This document shows, in pieces, positions 32,977 to 50,417 of a stretch of 64,000 nt of DNA. Position 1 is the stretch's first letter. Each line of letters opens with the position of its first letter. The notes under the pieces were generated by a model. That model did not search any database and was not told the origin of the DNA. It worked only from the letters and a program-made list of their open reading frames with translations. The stretch is from Hyalangium minutum (GTDB lineage: Bacteria; Myxococcota; Myxococcia; Myxococcales; Myxococcaceae), in contig NZ_JMCB01000017.1 of the NCBI RefSeq assembly GCF_000737315.1, forward strand, positions 124,001-188,000, given 5' to 3'. The position numbers and the translations under genes are program-made.

Positions 32977-35310
32977 ATGATAATAATCTCGACGCCGGAC
33001 GCGCCGAAGCTGAAGGAACTCTACGAGCGAAAGTTCATCCCTGCTCGGGAGCAACGCTGGCCTCAGTGGCTCAAGGACTATGTCGCCTATGTAGAGCGCG
33101 TTCAGTCCGCAACCGAAGTCGAGTGGGTGGCTCCCCAGTTCCAGAAATTCCTCTGGACTGACAATGGTGTCTCCACTGCGGGCATGGGCGCCATGGTGCA
33201 GGTCGACTCGGCCTACACGGACACAGCGCTGGCCAAGGTCCTATTCCGTATGCGGCAGGAGAAACTGCCCGAAGACACCCTCGAGCGCGCCAAGGTGTTG
33301 CAGTCCATGTTCGAAGAGATCATGGGAATGGTGACGCCCAAGCACAATGAGCGGAGACCAGGAGCTCGGTTGATCCGGATCTTTGCCGGTCTGTTCCCTC
33401 GAAACGTACTCTGCCTCCTCGACCAGCACCGCACGCACGTTGTCCGGCGCTATCTTGGGATGAAGAAGGGCGGGATGGGCACCATTGCCCAGCAGGTGGT
33501 GATCCGGCAGAGGCTGCAAGACTCTCTCGGAGAACCTTCGAGCCTCCGTGGGCACGTTGAACAGAGCATGTTCTCCTGGCTTCTCTACGAGCTGGCCGAG
33601 GAAGAGAACATCTCTGAACTCGAGGAGGCCCCTGTCCCGGGTGACCCATCCAAATCCGGAACGGACGCGCCACGCCTGAAGCTGCTCCCCTTCGAGGAGC
33701 AACGGAAGGGGCTCTTCTACATCCCTCGGGCCATCAACACGGTGATGCGGCTGGTGCGCTCCACCGAGACGGGCACTACCCGGGAAGAAATGCTGGAAGC
33801 CATTCGCGACCTCTTTCCGGGGCTGAAGAACTCTTCCCTGGAAATGTACCTCTCCGTGCTGCGGACAAACCTGGGGGTGATCGAATTCCGGGACAATGCA
33901 TTCCGGCCTAGTGCACGAGGGCAGCAACTCCTTGATGGTGAGGAGCCCAGCGAAGTGCTGGCCCCCATCCTCGTCGGTCAGATCTTCGGCTTTGCTCAGG
34001 TCCTCTGGATCCTGAAGGACAAGCCAGGCGGACTGGTGCGTTCGGAAATCGTTGAGCGGCTCCTCACCTGGTATCCGCGATGGACGACCCCGCGGGTGCC
34101 GAACGACGTGCTCACCTGGTCCAAAGAGATCGGGTTGGTGGAGGAGATCGGGGGTGCTGACAAGCGCGTCATCCTGACAGAGCCAGGCTCCTACTGGGCA
34201 AGTGGTCTCCCTGCGGACCTTGAAACGAAGTGGGGTCCCACCTCCATCATCGATGATCCCTCTCCTGCTGAAGGCACGGTGATCATACCGGGTCCCACCC
34301 TCGGGGCGGGGCTTCGCCCCGCGCCCTTTGAAAAGATCCGCGAGCGCTTCCAGAACGATAAGGAGCTGAAGGGACTGGTCTATCCCACCAGCTTCGTCCA
34401 TCTCTTCGATGCGGCGCTCCGCGCGTTGGACGGCAAACGGTTCGTGCTGCTGGCAGGGCTCTCCGGAACCGGGAAGACTTCTCTGGCGCGAGCGTACGCT
34501 CGTGCGTACTGCGAAGCCCTCGAACTCAACCCGGCCGACCACTACTGCGAGGTTTCCGTCCGGCCGGACTGGACTGACCCCACGGGCTTACTCGGCTATT
34601 ACAACCCGATCTCGGCCAAGCCGCGCTTCGAGGAGACGGAGGCACTTGAGTTGGTGCTGAGGGCCTCCCAGAACCCGACGCTGCCCTACTTTCTCTGCCT
34701 GGACGAGATGAACTTGGCGCGGGTCGAGCATTACTTCGCCCCCTTCCTTACCGCGATGGAAGGCAAGGGCGAGCTCCAGATCCACAACGAGCGCGACCGG
34801 ATTGATGGCGTCGAACCCCGCGTGCCATGGCCCCGCAACCTCTTCATCATCGGGACGGTCAACATGGATGAGACCACCCACGCCTTCTCCGACAAGGTGC
34901 TGGATCGTGCGTTCTCATTCGAACTGTGGGACGTGGACCTCGCGGCGTGGCAGGCTCGGGCCCTAGAGGCAGGCACTTCGGCGGACATGTTGCAACGAGT
35001 AATGCCCGTGCTGGAGAAGCTGCAGAAGGCGCTCGTCCCTGCGCGGCGACACTTCGGCTATCGCACCTGCCAGGAGGTGGTTGCTTTCTGTAGCGCGGTC
35101 AGCTCCCTTCCTCTGCAAGAGGCACTGGATGCCGCAGTGTTGGCCAAGGTGCTCCCCAAGCTGCGGGGTGATGACAGCGGCCCGCTGCCTCAGGCGCTCG
35201 CTGAAGTGCTTCGGATCTGCCAGGGCGAGAAGCTCCAGAACTCGGCCCAGAAGGTCGAGCAGATGAGGCGGTCCCTTGAGAGCCTGGGCGTAGCCCGCTT
35301 CTGGATGTGA
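32977..35310 (+). CDS. McrB-like AAA+ subunit of a modification-dependent restriction system
   Basis: GLSGTGKT, VRPDWTD, LDEMNLAR, GTVNMDETT, DRAF. Confidence 0.9.
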   Translation: MIIISTPDAPKLKELYERKFIPAREQRWPQWLKDYVAYVERVQSATEVEWVAPQFQKFLWTDNGVSTAGMGAMVQVDSAYTDTALAKVLFRMRQEKLPEDTLERAKVLQSMFEEIMGMVTPKHNERRPGARLIRIFAGLFPRNVLCLLDQHRTHVVRRYLGMKKGGMGTIAQQVVIRQRLQDSLGEPSSLRGHVEQSMFSWLLYELAEEENISELEEAPVPGDPSKSGTDAPRLKLLPFEEQRKGLFYIPRAINTVMRLVRSTETGTTREEMLEAIRDLFPGLKNSSLEMYLSVLRTNLGVIEFRDNAFRPSARGQQLLDGEEPSEVLAPILVGQIFGFAQVLWILKDKPGGLVRSEIVERLLTWYPRWTTPRVPNDVLTWSKEIGLVEEIGGADKRVILTEPGSYWASGLPADLETKWGPTSIIDDPSPAEGTVIIPGPTLGAGLRPAPFEKIRERFQNDKELKGLVYPTSFVHLFDAALRALDGKRFVLLAGLSGTGKTSLARAYARAYCEALELNPADHYCEVSVRPDWTDPTGLLGYYNPISAKPRFEETEALELVLRASQNPTLPYFLCLDEMNLARVEHYFAPFLTAMEGKGELQIHNERDRIDGVEPRVPWPRNLFIIGTVNMDETTHAFSDKVLDRAFSFELWDVDLAAWQARALEAGTSADMLQRVMPVLEKLQKALVPARRHFGYRTCQEVVAFCSAVSSLPLQEALDAAVLAKVLPKLRGDDSGPLPQALAEVLRICQGEKLQNSAQKVEQMRRSLESLGVARFWM

Positions 35311-35314
35311 GCAC

Positions 35315-36928
35315 ATGGACATCCTGATCACGCGTCGGGAGAAGTCCGTCCATGTGCCCTTGGAGCGACTTCCGGACGGGAGTTGGTCCGCTCGGGAGGG
35401 TGATGACCTTCGCATCCGTGTGCGTGCGTCCACACCCGCAGCGGTCACCCTCGCGGGGGCGATGCTCACGCTTGAGCACGTTACCCAGGAAGGGAATGTG
35501 CTTGAGACCTGCTTCCGGCTGAGCATCGAGACGTGGGCAGGCCGGGCGCGGCTCCTGGTACAAGCAGGACAGACAGAACAGACGGAGGCGCTCGATGTGA
35601 GTCCCCATCCCGGCAAGCTGGGCGTGGATGCCTACCGGGAGATGCTGGCGGAGCTGGTTGCTATCTCCAAGGATCTGCCCTGGGGACTGGGGCCGGGCTC
35701 CCATGCTGCGACTCGAGCCGACGAGTCGCCAATGCTGGTGCATGCGAGCGTCATCGACGCGGAGTTGCCAGCACTGCTCCAGGCGCTCCGCAGGCTGGCG
35801 CTCGATCCGCTGAGCTGGACGCGGCGAGAACGCGTCCTGGAGCGACTGCCCGCCAACCGGCGCGTGGATCCCGCCAGCTTCCGGTGGCTGGTGGCTCACC
35901 CACGAGCCCTGGGTGCAGTTCGGCCTTCCTCGCCCACGCAGTCGGCCGATTCTGGCGTCTTCATCGAACAGCGCCGCATCCAGAGCACGCTGGATCACCC
36001 AGCCACCCGCTACCTGAGCTACCTGCTTGAGCGACTGCTGCGAACGCTTCGGCGCAGTTCCAAGGCCTTTCACCAGATTTCGGGCCGAGAGCCCCGGGCG
36101 ATTGAGTACGCCCATGTGCTGGATGCCGCGACAGAGGAGATTGAAGCAACTTTGGGGCGCGTCCCATTCAAGGGCGTGCTTCCCGAGCCTCTTGGCCCAG
36201 GCTCATTGCAGGCCGTGATCGATCATCCCAGCTACGCGAGGGTTCAGCGCCTGGCCCAGCGCCTGTTGGATCCAGGCATGCAACTGGATGAGCAGGGCGC
36301 CTTCTCCTCCAGCCTTGGGTATACCTACGAGCTGTTCGAGTTGCTGGCCCTCTACCGACTGGCGGGTGGACTTTCGCGGGAGCTCGGGGAGGCGTGGACC
36401 TGCACGAGCACGCCTCCCCGTAGCTCTGGGCTGTTGGAGCGTCCACCTTTCGGATGTGTTTGGCGAGCCGCCTCGGTGAATGGACTGGTGCTAGAACTGC
36501 ACTACCAGCGAACGTTCACGGCTTGGTCCGAGCAAGGCCTGCACTTCCAGAGCCTGAGTGGTGAGCGACGCCCTGACTATGTCCTCCTGATCCTGCGTGA
36601 GGACAAGCCGCTGGGGTGGATCGTACTGGATGCCAAGTACCGTTCCAGTCGTGACGCCATTCACCAAGGGCTGGCGGATCTTCATGTGTACCGGGACTCA
36701 CTCCGTTGGCATGGGCAACCCGCTCGGGCTGGCTTCATCCTAGTGCCTCAAACGACGGAGGGCGCCAGTGCCTACGCGACCGCGAGCTATCATCAGACCC
36801 ATCACTTCGGAGCACTCATCCTCCAGGCCTCCGAGTGGTGGACACCGATCTTGAATGAGATTCAGGAGGCGTCTGGCCTTGCGCACTACCGATTCCCTAC
36901 GTCCCGCACGCCATCGACCACCGCCTGA
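35315..36928 (+). CDS. McrC-like (DUF2357-type) PD-(D/E)xK nuclease
   Basis: 4 bp after mcrB-like gene; YELF, RPDYVL, LDAKYR. Confidence 0.85.
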   Translation: MDILITRREKSVHVPLERLPDGSWSAREGDDLRIRVRASTPAAVTLAGAMLTLEHVTQEGNVLETCFRLSIETWAGRARLLVQAGQTEQTEALDVSPHPGKLGVDAYREMLAELVAISKDLPWGLGPGSHAATRADESPMLVHASVIDAELPALLQALRRLALDPLSWTRRERVLERLPANRRVDPASFRWLVAHPRALGAVRPSSPTQSADSGVFIEQRRIQSTLDHPATRYLSYLLERLLRTLRRSSKAFHQISGREPRAIEYAHVLDAATEEIEATLGRVPFKGVLPEPLGPGSLQAVIDHPSYARVQRLAQRLLDPGMQLDEQGAFSSSLGYTYELFELLALYRLAGGLSRELGEAWTCTSTPPRSSGLLERPPFGCVWRAASVNGLVLELHYQRTFTAWSEQGLHFQSLSGERRPDYVLLILREDKPLGWIVLDAKYRSSRDAIHQGLADLHVYRDSLRWHGQPARAGFILVPQTTEGASAYATASYHQTHHFGALILQASEWWTPILNEIQEASGLAHYRFPTSRTPSTTA

Positions 36929-37733: not shown

Positions 37734-39087
<1,354 letters not shown>

Positions 39088-46881: not shown

Positions 46882-46950
46882 CGGTTCCGACCAGTCGGAA
46901 GCAGACGCACGGTTCCGACCAGTCGGAAGCAGGCACACGGTTCCGGCCAG
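46882..46950. repeat. 28-bp tandem repeat (2 full copies and 1 partial) carrying the near-palindrome TTCCGAC-CA-GTCGGAA
   Basis: Units start at 46882, 46910 and 46938. Confidence 0.85.
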
Positions 46951-47176: not shown

Positions 47177-47201
47177 GCCCTCCTGCTCACAACAGGAGGG
47201 C
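47177..47201 (+). promoter_or_regulatory. 9-bp hairpin occluding the Shine-Dalgarno of the downstream toxin gene
   Basis: GCCCTCCTG-ctcacaa-CAGGAGGGC, then TC and ATG 47204. Confidence 0.65.
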
Positions 47202-47203
47202 TC

Positions 47204-49048
47204 ATGAACCTGTGGCAGAAGGTGCGAGAGCTCGAAGGAAGTCCGGGAGCGCACCCGCCCTCGCGGTTCCCTGCGGCTGTCAGCCTGTTGCTGCTGGCTT
47301 TGTTCGTCGCGCCTGGGGCGCACGCCTCTGATGAGACGAGCCCGATGCGGGCAGTGGTGGGGGCGGGTGTCTCGCAGGGCACCGCGCTGGGCAGTTCCTG
47401 GGCGCCGCGCACCTCGTACAGCGTGAGCCTGTGGGGCTTGTGGGAGGCAGGTCAGGGCATAGGGGTGCGGTTGACGGTGCTGCCCCCGGCCACCTCCGCC
47501 GGAGCGTGGGAGCTGTCCACGGACGCGTTGGCGCGCTTCACGGGCGAGGGGCCGCTGTACTTCAAAGCCATGGGTGGAGCGGCCCTCACTCCCCGCTCCT
47601 GGGGGGCTCCACGGCTGCGCGCTGGGGGCGAAGCCGGGGTGCACGCCATCCGCGGGAGCATTGGGTTGGAGCTGGGCGTGGCTGGCGTGTACGCGTTCCC
47701 GCCCTCCCGATTCGCGCAAGGCGAGGGGGTGGTCTCCCTCGGGGTGGGCCTCCTCTTCGGCTTCGGCGCCCCGTCCCACGCTCCTGCTCTGGCCCCGCCT
47801 CAGCGCTCATGGGCGCAGCAGTCCGCCCACAGTCCAGCAGGTGCCTTCCCGCAGCAGAGCCCGGGCCCTTCGTCCGCAGCAGAGCTGAGCGTGGCGGGGC
47901 TCTCGCCTGCTCCTTCGGAGGTGGCGCACGCCCCCTCCGCCGAGCGGGATGTGATTCAGCAGATTCTGCTCCTGCGAAAACCCGGGTACGTCCTGTCCTG
48001 GTGGGCCTCGGGCCCCGGCGGACAGGCCATGCTGCAGTGGACCCACCCGCTGTCCCAGTGGGAACGCAAGTACATCGAGACGATGAGCGCGGAGACAGTA
48101 CCCGCGCCCATCCGCATGTGGCCGCGGGTGACGCTGGAGGGCCTTACCCCCGAGCAGACCGAGGACATGGAACGCCGGCTGGGAGCAGGAATGGCCGCCG
48201 CCGAGGGGTATGCCCACTGGGAGAACCGGCGGCGCATCGTCAAGCACTACGTCATGACGCACCCCACTACCCTTCGGCTCCTCCTGACGGGGTATGAGGT
48301 GGCGAGGGATAGCAACCCGCTGCACTTCGCGCTGGAGCGCGGGTGGCAGATGGCCAGTGGCCAGGAGATGTTCACGGGCCAGGAGGTGTCCCAGCTCGGC
48401 GCGGCCCAAGAGTTCTTCACGGCGCTGGCGGTGGGCGTGGCCACTGGCAAGTTGATGACCGCCACGCGGCCGGTGCCCGGGTGGGGTGTTCCAGAGCCGG
48501 TGGAGCCGGTGGCTCCTGGCAAGGGAGAGGCTCCGCCCGCTCCGCCGCGAGCCGTGGCGCCTACGCCAGAGCCCGCTCCGGCGCCAGCTCCGCCCCCTCC
48601 GGCACCGGGCCCGTTCGCGCCCTCACCCGAACTGGTCCAAGCCCTCACGGGCATGAACCCAACGCCGCAGGTGTCCGCCGGCCCACGCCTGCGTCAGGAT
48701 GTCACCGTCAACCCGAAAGTACCCAAACTCCTCAAGACGGACCGTCCCATCAGCCCCAGCCCCAGGCAAAATGCGCAACTCCAGAGGGACATCGAGTACC
48801 TGAAGAACGAGCTAGGCGCCGAGAACATTCGGGTGAACCAGCAGCAACTGACGTTCACGAACGGCCAGCGTGTGGGAATCAATCGGCCGGACCTCCAATT
48901 CGACTACAACAACCGCCGCTACTCTGTGGAGTACGACTCACCGACTTCGGACCGTGGCCCTCGCCACCAGTCGCGCCTCACCGCCAACAACCCGGAGGGC
49001 GAAGTCATCCGGATCATCATTCCTGAGCCAGAAGGTGTGCCTCCATGA
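47204..49048 (+). CDS. Putative polymorphic toxin: signal peptide, predicted 8-strand OM beta-barrel, linker, helical domain, endonuclease-like C-terminus
   Basis: …PGAHA signal; eight amphipathic strands ending GLLFGF; RVNQQQ…GINRPDLQF…VEYD tail; ATGA overlap with partner gene. Confidence 0.6.
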   Translation: MNLWQKVRELEGSPGAHPPSRFPAAVSLLLLALFVAPGAHASDETSPMRAVVGAGVSQGTALGSSWAPRTSYSVSLWGLWEAGQGIGVRLTVLPPATSAGAWELSTDALARFTGEGPLYFKAMGGAALTPRSWGAPRLRAGGEAGVHAIRGSIGLELGVAGVYAFPPSRFAQGEGVVSLGVGLLFGFGAPSHAPALAPPQRSWAQQSAHSPAGAFPQQSPGPSSAAELSVAGLSPAPSEVAHAPSAERDVIQQILLLRKPGYVLSWWASGPGGQAMLQWTHPLSQWERKYIETMSAETVPAPIRMWPRVTLEGLTPEQTEDMERRLGAGMAAAEGYAHWENRRRIVKHYVMTHPTTLRLLLTGYEVARDSNPLHFALERGWQMASGQEMFTGQEVSQLGAAQEFFTALAVGVATGKLMTATRPVPGWGVPEPVEPVAPGKGEAPPAPPRAVAPTPEPAPAPAPPPPAPGPFAPSPELVQALTGMNPTPQVSAGPRLRQDVTVNPKVPKLLKTDRPISPSPRQNAQLQRDIEYLKNELGAENIRVNQQQLTFTNGQRVGINRPDLQFDYNNRRYSVEYDSPTSDRGPRHQSRLTANNPEGEVIRIIIPEPEGVPP

Positions 49049-49782
49049 CGCAGGAGATGCAGAGGCTGCTGCTCGAGGACCGCTGGGCGCCTGTCACTTC
49101 AGAGATGGGCTTTCTGGAGTTGGGAGCGGAGCAGGCGGCGCAAGCCTTCGCTACGTGGCAGCGAGGGCTGGCGACGTCCCGTGGCTTCACCATTGAGGTA
49201 CTGCCCGTCGCGGGCCCTTTGGAACCAGCCCTCTCCCATCTGCTGCCCCTCAGTGGTGGGGAAACCCAACGGCGCCTGTTCATCCCCACGCGCAGCGCCT
49301 GGACCGCCTACGTCACCAACCAATGGACCGGGACGGATGCCGCCAGCGCCATGAGCGTCATGGCCCGCAGGCTGAGCATCCGGGGCCTGCGGGTCGTCGC
49401 CGTGCCCCACACCCTGCGCGGGGACCGAGGCCGCTATGGCGCGGTCATGCTGGATGTGTTCGGTCCACAGCAGCCGGGCAAACTCAACAACTATGTCCGC
49501 GCCGTGGAGGTGGCCAATGACGGCGGACACTGGGTCTTCGAGCAGTCGGGTGAGCCCTTCCCCTTCGAGCAGGTGAAGCAGTACCAGGCACGCCGGGTGA
49601 GGGACCGCTTCACCTTTGAGATGCTCAAGGACTACCTACGCCACCTGGGACTTTCCCCCTTCGAGGAGGACTTCTACCTGCCTTCGGGCTCCTGCGCGTG
49701 GCTCGTCCAAAAGACAGGCCCCTTCACCCCTACCGGGCCGGAGTACACGCTGGAGGAGGCCCGCGCCGCCCACGTGTTGTGA
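49045..49782 (+). CDS. Putative cognate immunity protein
   Basis: Translationally coupled to the toxin; no signal peptide. Confidence 0.55.
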   Translation: MTQEMQRLLLEDRWAPVTSEMGFLELGAEQAAQAFATWQRGLATSRGFTIEVLPVAGPLEPALSHLLPLSGGETQRRLFIPTRSAWTAYVTNQWTGTDAASAMSVMARRLSIRGLRVVAVPHTLRGDRGRYGAVMLDVFGPQQPGKLNNYVRAVEVANDGGHWVFEQSGEPFPFEQVKQYQARRVRDRFTFEMLKDYLRHLGLSPFEEDFYLPSGSCAWLVQKTGPFTPTGPEYTLEEARAAHVL

Positions 49783-49865: not shown

Positions 49866-50417
49866 CTACGGCGCCACGGGAATCTGCGCCAACAGGATGC
49901 GGTCCTTGCCGTCATTGCGGACCGCCTCCGGGTTGGTGAGCTTCATGCGCGTGTCCGAGCGCGGCTCCCACAGCCCCATCCACAAGGTGACGGAGCGCAC
50001 GGAGGAGCCGGGCGGGATGTAGATGTTGAAGTCATCCCTCACCGTCTCGCCCGGCTTCCACTGCGTGGTGGGGTAGATGCCGCCCGAGGGCTTGTGGTCG
50101 ATGTTCATCCGCTCCATCTTCCCCTCCGAGTCCTCCAGGTGGACGAAGATGGTGTAGTCCTCGAGGATGGGCTGCAGCACCTTGAAGAAGACGGTGACGC
50201 GTGCGGGCTCGCCCTTGACGATGCGCCCCGGCGTCACCGAGCCGCCCACCAGCTCCACCTTCTCCCCCAGGTTGGCGCCGCTCTTCAGCGCCAGCGGAGG
50301 CACCTGCTGCACCGTGGCTTGACGGCGCTCGGCCTCGGAAGCCCCTCCCGGCGCTTCGACGATGCAGGCCGAGAGCAGCACCGTGGGCAGCACAACGGAC
50401 AGGCAGGACAGTCGCAT
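49866..50417 (-). CDS. Hypothetical lipoprotein with Ig/beta-sandwich domain
   Basis: Lipobox LLSAC; IFVHL…DHKP..G.YPTTQWKPGE.VRD pattern. Confidence 0.7.
   Translation of the reverse strand: MRLSCLSVVLPTVLLSACIVEAPGGASEAERRQATVQQVPPLALKSGANLGEKVELVGGSVTPGRIVKGEPARVTVFFKVLQPILEDYTIFVHLEDSEGKMERMNIDHKPSGGIYPTTQWKPGETVRDDFNIYIPPGSSVRSVTLWMGLWEPRSDTRMKLTNPEAVRNDGKDRILLAQIPVAP

Follow-up and report, generated by a model that had tools for sequence, protein, structure and literature searches.

Can a polymorphic toxin be tethered to the outer membrane by a protein barrel of its own instead of by a lipid and, if so, how might it reach another cell? The question is raised by a pair of overlapping genes in a 64-kb stretch of Hyalangium minutum DNA (the window), one encoding a protein of 614 amino acids (aa), here called the toxin and the source of the residue numbers used below, and the other a 245-aa partner. 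An earlier reading of the locus, made from the letters alone (the sequence-only reading), had described a Sec signal without a lipobox, strands running to GLLFGF, linkers, a helical region, an endonuclease-like tip and a partner gene coupled through ATGA, and we find every one of these elements where that reading had placed it. Our analysis suggests that the toxin-fused barrel, replacing the lipid anchor, is a so far undescribed variant of the myxobacterial toxin–immunity cassettes that are tethered to the outer membrane. That the two genes form a barrel-anchored toxin–immunity pair is, in our judgement, highly probable; that the toxin is delivered by outer-membrane exchange, as an analogy with the SitA toxins of Myxococcus would have it, stands a little short of an even chance. 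The explanation as a whole, a barrel-tethered toxin–immunity cassette with TraAB exchange as its most likely means of delivery, we put at a probability of about 0.55.

A predicted barrel in place of a lipid

The toxin opens with a predicted type I signal peptide that reads ...RFPAAVSLLLLALFVAPGAHA before the cleavage site and SDE after it. When the whole protein is scanned, only this segment rises above 1.6 on the Kyte–Doolittle scale. Because the 614 residues include no cysteine at all, the toxin cannot be a lipoprotein, and the barrel-bearing homologues likewise keep AxA sites followed by Ser or Ala and have no cysteine there either. A type II signal with a lipobox cysteine is what defines SitA proteins, and since the toxin fails that test we have not filed it as a member of the SitA family. 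The SitA6 model, the sole SitA toxin model to surface in our NCBIfam scans, does not match it.

What follows the signal peptide resembles a known class of membrane anchor in structure. A full-length AlphaFold2 (AF2) model, built from a 53-sequence alignment, has eight strands here (49-62, 68-79, 85-93, 103-113, 118-128, 137-150, 153-165 and 174-185), with a predicted local distance difference test score (pLDDT) of about 77-92 and connections between strands that are all short, at 2-9 residues. Compared with the PDB by Foldseek, the model returns 8-stranded outer-membrane barrels as its top matches (NspA, the transmembrane part of OmpA (OmpA-TM), Ail, OmpX and PagL; E 1.5e-5 to 1e-3), the best being NspA (E 1.5e-5, target-normalised TM-score 0.61), so the structure prediction bears out the barrel that had been proposed from the letters. 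The final strand ends GVGLLFGF (180-187), in which the G, L, F and G columns are invariant in alignment A2; we take this to be the pattern expected of a β-signal for the β-barrel assembly machinery (BAM). In Pfam, none of the curated outer-membrane protein families (OmpA_membrane, OMP_b-brl, Ail_Lom and others) matches the barrel at E ≤ 1. Eight being an even number of strands, both barrel termini would be periplasmic and about 430 residues would therefore hang in the periplasm. On the strength of the model, the N-terminus is predicted to be an outer-membrane barrel anchor that takes the place of a lipid.

An N-terminal barrel followed by long Pro-rich linkers and a passenger is superficially like type Ve secretion, and the barrel might accordingly be imagined to export its own passenger to the cell surface, in the manner of an autotransporter or inverse autotransporter, for action from outside like that of contact-dependent growth inhibition (CDI) toxins. 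We consider this very improbable. The barrels that it matches, OmpX, NspA and OmpA-TM, have eight strands and are all without a translocation pore, whereas the barrels of type V systems, with their 12 or 16 strands, gave weak, partial Foldseek matches only; moreover, homologues of the toxin use a lipobox instead, which anchors but does not secrete.

The barrel appears to be a module that is used repeatedly. When 1.84 billion representative proteins were searched exhaustively with the barrel profile, no word index being used, 21 were retrieved (13 of them at E < 1e-10), all belonging to one small family. The sequence-only reading had proposed looking for this barrel in fusion with further tips, and it is joined to at least six different C-termini. 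For example, P0082 carries the barrel, the helical domain and an AHH-like tip, and its downstream gene, which overlaps by 4 bp, looks like a SUKH gene and is not the partner. P0084 bears a third type of tip, P0104 a GIY-YIG-looking tip behind a different linker, and P0345 and P0349 other C-termini, while P0355 is a barrel-only protein of 187 aa on a 1.1-kb contig that holds no informative neighbour.

Just as the tips behind the barrel differ, so do the anchors in front of what lies behind it. Barrel protein P0084 (208-811) and lipoprotein P0098 (101-666) align end to end at 47% identity (E 4e-167), and P0098 has a lipobox (LSGC) and a Cys-rich segment at its N-terminus where P0084 has the barrel. 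In other lipobox relatives the helical domain is combined either with an HHV-type tip or with a YwqJ deaminase tip, the latter encoded ahead of a YwqK-like gene, and two of the helical-domain lipoproteins weakly match TIGR02269 (SitA6) over its N-terminus only (E 1.8e-5, below the cutoff). These comparisons give computational support to the view that a homologue may have a lipobox anchor where another has the barrel, and that the barrel is a reusable delivery module.

Beside P0082 and its SUKH-like neighbour we also noted a lipoprotein gene (locus L047, 2902-4071; lipobox LSAC) that encodes at least 390 aa up to the end of the contig. Its product has no family match and may be a further toxin.

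A nuclease-like tip and its partner gene

Behind the barrel comes a conserved, all-helical domain set between two disordered linkers, the first of which is the least conserved segment of the protein (65% mean pairwise identity). The helical domain is modelled at a pLDDT of about 95 up to residue 360 and of about 71-79 for residues 361-410, and it contains the motifs HPLSxWE, WENRRRIVKHYxxTHP and FALERGWQ. Its last helix (398-420) is moderately hydrophobic, and we rejected it as a classical transmembrane segment because its Kyte–Doolittle hydropathy of 1.16 lies under the usual threshold. Between the second linker and the tip stands a junction motif, ELVQALTGMNPT, that is kept in relatives with the same tip (tip A); where the tip is another one, a similar motif that also contains TG, ...AATGTDG..., stands in this position.

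No other part of the toxin is shared as widely as the helical domain. It is found behind lipobox, barrel or eCIS-core (PF13699) N-termini, and the tips attached to it include YwqJ deaminase, HHV/AHH-like and DUF4258-like ones; one of its members gives a marginal match to Pre-toxin-TG, and a Paraburkholderia protein has it without any recognisable N-terminal module or anchor. SitA proteins are described as carrying 'escort domains' (PMC8546572). From its position, and by analogy with these, we propose that the helical domain plays a role in toxin release or entry.

The tip includes RVNQQQ (543-548), RVGINRPDLQF (556-566) and VEYD (575-578). In an alignment of the last ~140 residues of the toxin (A3; 34 sequences, including actinobacterial ones), NQQQ (545-548), RVGxNRPD (556-563), E576, R584, H588 and R591 are invariant. 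Modelled alone, the tip reaches a pLDDT of 88.8 and a predicted TM-score of 0.83, and the order of helices (H) and strands (E) in this 141-residue model (own numbering: H47-64, E67-71, E91-95, E98-105, H112-122, E127-132) gives the α-β-β-β-α-β core of the PD-(D/E)xK superfamily. Its best Foldseek E-values are 0.03 (PDB) and 1.1e-3 (BFVD), and those matches that carry a name belong, with few exceptions, to the PD-(D/E)xK nucleases: the VRR-nuc domain of FAN1, Bax1, the Hjc and RecU resolvases, BspD6I and restriction enzymes, together with further Holliday junction resolvases, Vsr/DUF559 and a bunyaviral endonuclease. The 'endonuclease-like' label that the tip had been given therefore finds support only at the level of the fold, where the matches are weak but consistent, and no single match is significant on its own.

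Of the catalytic signature of this superfamily, the PD (D563) and the glutamate (E576) are invariant, and we call the active site atypical because the position of the lysine is taken by Asp or Glu. The invariant H588, R584, R591 and NQQQ may substitute for the missing residue. The tip is thus predicted from its model to be a nuclease of the PD-(D/E)xK fold with an atypical active site, acting as a DNase or an RNase; some toxins of this fold are tRNases.

The partner has neither a signal peptide nor a transmembrane segment and is cytoplasmic by prediction. In every fetched tip-A locus the first match behind the toxin is a homologue of the partner, which in most of them starts 0-50 bp 3′ of the tip; such a homologue is absent from the fetched loci in which the same helical domain bears a different tip. 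This pairing spans three contexts: barrel toxins in Hyalangium, a lipoprotein in Archangium and genes next to Rhs repeats. In the Archangium gephyra locus (L043, 2936-5046; CP043495), tip and partner are each 67% identical to those of the window, and the open frame encodes a 453-aa protein with a lipobox (LLLTGC) and an unrelated N-terminal domain, which a P/A-rich linker and the junction motif connect to the tip. On an unrelated metagenomic contig of 71% GC (L045, 160-5178), the tip comes directly after two RHS-repeat open reading frames (ORFs). The next gene, which overlaps that of the tip by 4 bp, encodes a 203-aa protein with 36% identity to the partner (E 6e-27). A second Rhs-linked locus also has both tip and partner. 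Relatives also have extra partner genes: in L012 (4001-9184), one full barrel-toxin gene is followed by four partner genes, two of which are preceded by remnants of about 35 codons from the 3′ end of the tip, an array of orphans such as CDI and Rhs loci also have, and L014 and L019 have extra immunity genes as well. Since the partner co-occurs so strictly with the tip, we read it as an immunity protein, and it is predicted from this co-occurrence to be the cognate one.

Three of the related loci call for separate remarks. The deposited annotation of the A. gephyra gene calls the last 98 aa only, and this is probably an under-annotated lipoprotein toxin. On the 71% GC contig there is a 4-bp overlap between Rhs gene and tip ORF that may reflect a frameshift or an assembly break. 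Finally, in L023 (4001-6573) the matches to toxin and partner are split over several reading frames, so that this copy is probably a decaying pseudogene.

In these respects the system behaves as polymorphic toxins do: its relatives have alternative C-termini, a downstream immunity gene that tracks the tip and orphan cassettes. The suggestion of a polymorphic toxin with a partner is accordingly well matched by what is seen across loci, where tip and partner look like a portable toxin–immunity module. With Rhs and CDI toxins (Zhang et al. 2012, PMC3482391) the cassette shares a conserved delivery part, a junction motif, a swappable tip and an immunity gene, as well as, in its relatives, arrays of orphan tips and immunity genes and the occurrence of the same tip and partner beside RHS-repeat genes. 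It differs from them in its kind of delivery module: at the window locus there is neither a YD-repeat shell nor two-partner secretion, nor any marker of a type VI secretion system. The nuclease colicins of the E type offer another parallel, having domains for envelope association, translocation and nuclease activity along with a co-transcribed immunity protein; unlike the window toxin, which is predicted to be integral to the producer's membrane, they are soluble, released and parasitise outer-membrane receptors.

The layout of the toxin is also that of OmpA, which has an N-terminal 8-stranded barrel with periplasmic termini, a linker and a periplasmic C-terminal part, and neither the toxin nor the partner matches Pfam or NCBIfam. 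Both points would suit an OmpA-like envelope protein with a housekeeping periplasmic domain and an unrelated gene downstream of it. We find such an account scarcely credible, given that the tip–partner module is also found beside Rhs genes and on lipoproteins, that the same scaffold bears recognised toxin domains (YwqJ deaminase, and an eCIS-core context), that relatives have orphan immunity arrays, and that the cassette is multi-copy, dispersed and atypical in its GC content at third codon positions (GC3). The barrel itself differs from OmpA, OmpX, NspA, Ail and PagL in having very short external loops and in belonging to none of their sequence families, and the part that in OmpA is a peptidoglycan-binding domain is a toxin module here.

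How the toxin might travel

Where the cassette occurs bears on how it might be delivered. Homologues of the toxin (n = 104) and of the partner (n = 543), numbers that argue against chance ORFs, come nearly all from Hyalangium or from other Myxococcaceae/Archangiaceae genomes and metagenomes. Full-length relatives, 64-83% identical, are from Hyalangium and related metagenome-assembled genomes, and the barrel-toxin family is confined to Hyalangium/Archangiaceae/Myxococcaceae. There are at least seven loci in Hyalangium sp. H3_16, at least three in H. versicolor and at least six proteins from H. minutum. The cassettes are dispersed, as none of 42 related loci shares the flanking genes of the window; several dispersed loci per genome are typical of sitAI (PMC8546572). 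Relatives of toxin or barrel are absent from the viral contigs of IMG/VR, so there is no sign of carriage by prophages. Among 60 full-length paralogues, mean identity is 82% for the barrel, 78% for the helical domain and 81% for the tip. This even divergence led us to reject the idea that the tip is hypervariable among paralogues: variation within this subfamily is allelic and not modular. The same tip type likewise occurs as diverged alleles in SitA4, SitA6 and SitA7 (PMC8546572).

The closest parallel is with SitA/SitI of Myxococcus (PMC5562445, PMC8546572). Both systems are confined to myxobacteria, have an immunity gene for a cytoplasmic protein directly downstream of the toxin gene and occupy many dispersed loci per genome; the window toxin is further predicted to share with SitA anchoring on the periplasmic side of the outer membrane and an order of conserved N-terminal region, linker and nuclease-type C-terminal tip. 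In addition, there are lipobox proteins, some of them SitA6-like at the N-terminus, that contain homologues of its helical domain and of its tip. The difference lies in the anchor, an integral 8-stranded barrel on a toxin that has neither lipobox nor cysteine. By this analogy we propose that the toxin works like a SitA member.

The mechanism we have in mind would run as follows. The toxin would be exported by Sec and, judging from its sequence, cleaved by signal peptidase I after AHA41, whereupon BAM would insert residues 48-187 as a minimal barrel of the OmpX/OmpA-TM kind, as structure prediction suggests. Linker 1, the helical domain, linker 2 and the nuclease-fold tip, the ~430 residues mentioned above, would then lie in the periplasm, with linkers of 57 and 54 aa that could extend to about 20 nm each and so be long enough to span it. 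The producer would be guarded by the translationally coupled cytoplasmic partner, which, if its co-occurrence with the tip is a guide, would neutralise it. The remaining steps are drawn by analogy with SitA lipoproteins: the barrel-anchored toxin would move into a neighbour's outer membrane during TraAB exchange, the helical domain would act as an 'escort' that takes the tip, probably once it has been freed by proteolysis, across the inner membrane, and the tip would cleave nucleic acid in recipients without the matching partner allele. We favour the TraAB route because lipobox and barrel are swapped between homologues, because there are SitA6-like relatives, because of the taxonomic restriction and the copy number of the family, and because the window also contains, 8 kb from the cassette, a SitA6/SitI6-like pair. 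It is favoured, too, by the traAB alleles reported for Hyalangium (PMC6372800) and by the description of the Myxococcus xanthus outer membrane as fluid and exchanging outer-membrane proteins (PMC12045341).

Several points weigh against this explanation. First, published searches for SitA found that all orthologues had lipoboxes (PMC5562445), and the families described so far, six in number (SitA1/2 to SitA7), consist of lipoproteins (PMC8546572); we found in the literature no direct demonstration that outer-membrane exchange moves an integral β-barrel. Second, a lipoprotein might be extracted from the membrane but a barrel cannot be, and release would need a cleavage step. Third, the helical domain is not specific to outer-membrane exchange, as it is also present in eCIS-core toxins and in the anchorless Paraburkholderia protein. 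The last points concern the tip. Its fold matches are each non-significant at the E-values given above, the canonical lysine of (D/E)xK is Asp or Glu in its family (D578 in the VEYD of the window), the window copy has an asparagine at 596 (NNP, residues 595-597, 48986-48994) where about 90% of relatives have an aspartate (NDP), and across the 60 paralogues the tip varies no more than the barrel does (81% against 82% mean identity).

A different journey by the same pair of proteins can be considered. The toxin might be delivered in outer-membrane vesicles or after lysis, with the barrel serving to load it, facing the periplasm, into vesicles that fuse with the envelopes of prey or of competitors. 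The evidence for anchoring and topology would be identical under such a scheme, a nuclease that acts in the cytoplasm needs an immunity gene by whatever route it travels, and helical domain and tip both turn up outside the myxobacteria, in systems that lack outer-membrane exchange. We nevertheless hold delivery in vesicles or by lysis to be unlikely. The barrel module is confined to myxobacterial lineages that bear traAB, homologues swap it for lipoboxes with SitA6-like N-termini, and so many diverged pairs of paralogues, together with the arrays of orphan immunity genes, suit allele-specific conflict within a species better than they suit broad predation.

A further possibility concerns what the barrel does. 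SitB has a type I signal and a predicted outer-membrane barrel, is coupled to SitA and promotes its transfer, and sitB lies directly 5′ of sitA with an overlap of 11 bp (PMC5562445). A barrel in a Sit-type system is therefore not wholly new, a precedent that the sequence-only reading overlooked when it called the architecture unrecognised. What does hold of that claim is that a toxin-fused barrel is absent from the literature we searched: a barrel-anchored polymorphic toxin is described neither in Zhang et al. 2012 (PMC3482391) nor in literature searchable up to 2026. SitB is a separate polypeptide encoded upstream, whereas the window barrel is fused N-terminally to the toxin, and one may ask whether it is a fused SitB equivalent that actively promotes retention and serial transfer. 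A type I signal and a barrel do stand directly N-terminal to a SitA-like combination of escort and toxin, and P0355 is a stand-alone, barrel-only relative. Still, none of the 21 family proteins retrieved with the barrel profile is identifiable as SitB, and no sitB-like gene is seen upstream of the lipoprotein relatives; a SitB–SitA type of fusion strikes us as improbable. Returning to the barrel as an anchor that travels by TraAB exchange, we would suggest tentatively, with the odds leaning somewhat against it, that the toxin stands for a seventh class of outer-membrane exchange toxin, the first six being lipoproteins, in which the integral barrel (possibly a fused SitB equivalent) is the carrier and the helical domain is a general module for inner-membrane entry or a pre-toxin module, common to toxins of the lipoprotein, barrel and eCIS types.

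The cassette in its surroundings

The positions of the parts discussed so far, and of the signals upstream of them, are collected in Table 1.

Table 1. Parts of the toxin–partner cassette and the elements 5′ of it, in window positions (AF2, AlphaFold2; nt, nucleotides).
Feature	Residues	Position	Strand	Remarks
Tandem repeat, 2.5 copies of a 28-nt unit		46882-46950	+	each unit with the perfect palindrome TTCCGACCAGTCGGAA
Shine–Dalgarno sequence AGGAGG		47194-47199	+	4 nt 5′ of the ATG at 47204
Toxin ORF		47204-49048	+	614 aa
Type I (Sec) signal peptide	1-41	47204-47326	+	predicted cleavage between AHA and SDE; no lipobox
Predicted 8-stranded outer-membrane β-barrel	48-187	47345-47764	+	AF2 and Foldseek; short loops (5-9 aa)
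Disordered linker 1, P/S/A/Q-rich	188-244	47765-47935	+	pLDDT <50
All-helical pre-toxin (escort-like) domain	245-420	47936-48463	+	AF2; conserved
Linker 2, Pro/Ala-rich	421-474	48464-48625	+	pLDDT <50
Junction motif ELVQALTGMNPT	476-487	48629-48664	+	precedes the tip
Toxin tip	495-606	48686-49021	+	α-β-β-β-α-β core at 520-606
Partner ORF		49045-49782	+	245 aa; start overlaps the toxin stop

The TGA of the toxin and the ATG of the partner share the sequence ATGA at 49045. In both genes GC3 is somewhat lower than in the flanking genes (0.81 in the toxin and 0.84 in the partner, against 0.89-0.96), which is consistent with fairly recent acquisition or with relaxed codon adaptation. The intergenic region 5′ of the toxin is 610 bp long and holds, about 250 nt before the start codon, the array of TTCCGACCAGTCGGAA repeats. 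These may be an operator or binding site for a regulator, perhaps one tied to the cassette; the repeat is not conserved upstream of related loci. An RND pump and a peptidoglycan-binding amidase are encoded upstream, and ftsY and a probable peptidase with an HExxH motif downstream. The 64-kb window contains no second copy of toxin or partner and no orphan tip or immunity cassettes.

Database searches add little to the identity of either protein. Pfam and NCBIfam scans of toxin and partner returned no match at E ≤ 1 and those of diverse tip homologues nothing, and the PDB, when searched by sequence with profiles of the whole toxin and of the tip and with the partner, yielded low-complexity or chance matches only.

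Other genes in the window deserve mention. Convergent with the partner gene is one for a 183-aa lipoprotein (MRLSCLSVVLPTVLLSAC...; 49866-50417, minus strand; GC3 0.93), which is masked in ORF lists by a spurious 649-aa ORF antisense to ftsY. At 37734-39087 on the minus strand, a 228-aa lipoprotein with a lipobox (VVGC) and a Cys-rich N-terminus is followed by an overlapping gene for a 254-aa protein. The tip of the former is 64% identical to that of lipoprotein P0087, which itself has the helical domain described above, and the latter, a double-CXXCG protein, passes the Pfam cutoff for Gmx_para_CXXCG and weakly matches the SitI6 immunity family. The pair looks like a SitA6/SitI6-type locus and is the one cited above as lying 8 kb from the cassette. 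Further upstream, at 32977-36928 on the plus strand, are two McrBC-like genes, the first for a 777-aa NTPase of the AAA_5/McrB-like kind and the second for a 537-aa, McrC-like protein with DUF2357 and PDDEXK_7. The stretch from about 30 to 40 kb has a GC content of 62-66%, compared with about 68-71% elsewhere, and as the McrBC-like pair sits in it, an acquired island of defence and toxin genes is suggested.

The analysis has consequences beyond this one locus. First, it defines three families for which neither Pfam nor NCBIfam has a model: the minimal barrel anchor, the helical pre-toxin domain, and the nuclease-like tip with its immunity protein. Models of these would be useful for annotating myxobacterial and other genomes, given that the tip and its immunity protein are also used by Rhs toxins. 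Second, it makes a set of questions testable: what purpose the barrel-shaped accessory SitB serves, and how a toxin tethered to the outer membrane is released and crosses the periplasm and the inner membrane. Finally, among the cases in which bacteria share the contents of their membranes to distinguish kin from non-kin, outer-membrane exchange is the best studied, and the cassette poses the testable question of whether integral outer-membrane proteins, beyond lipoproteins and lipids, are exchanged and weaponised. If the toxin does stand for a seventh class, TraAB exchange would be shown to move integral outer-membrane proteins as vehicles for toxins.

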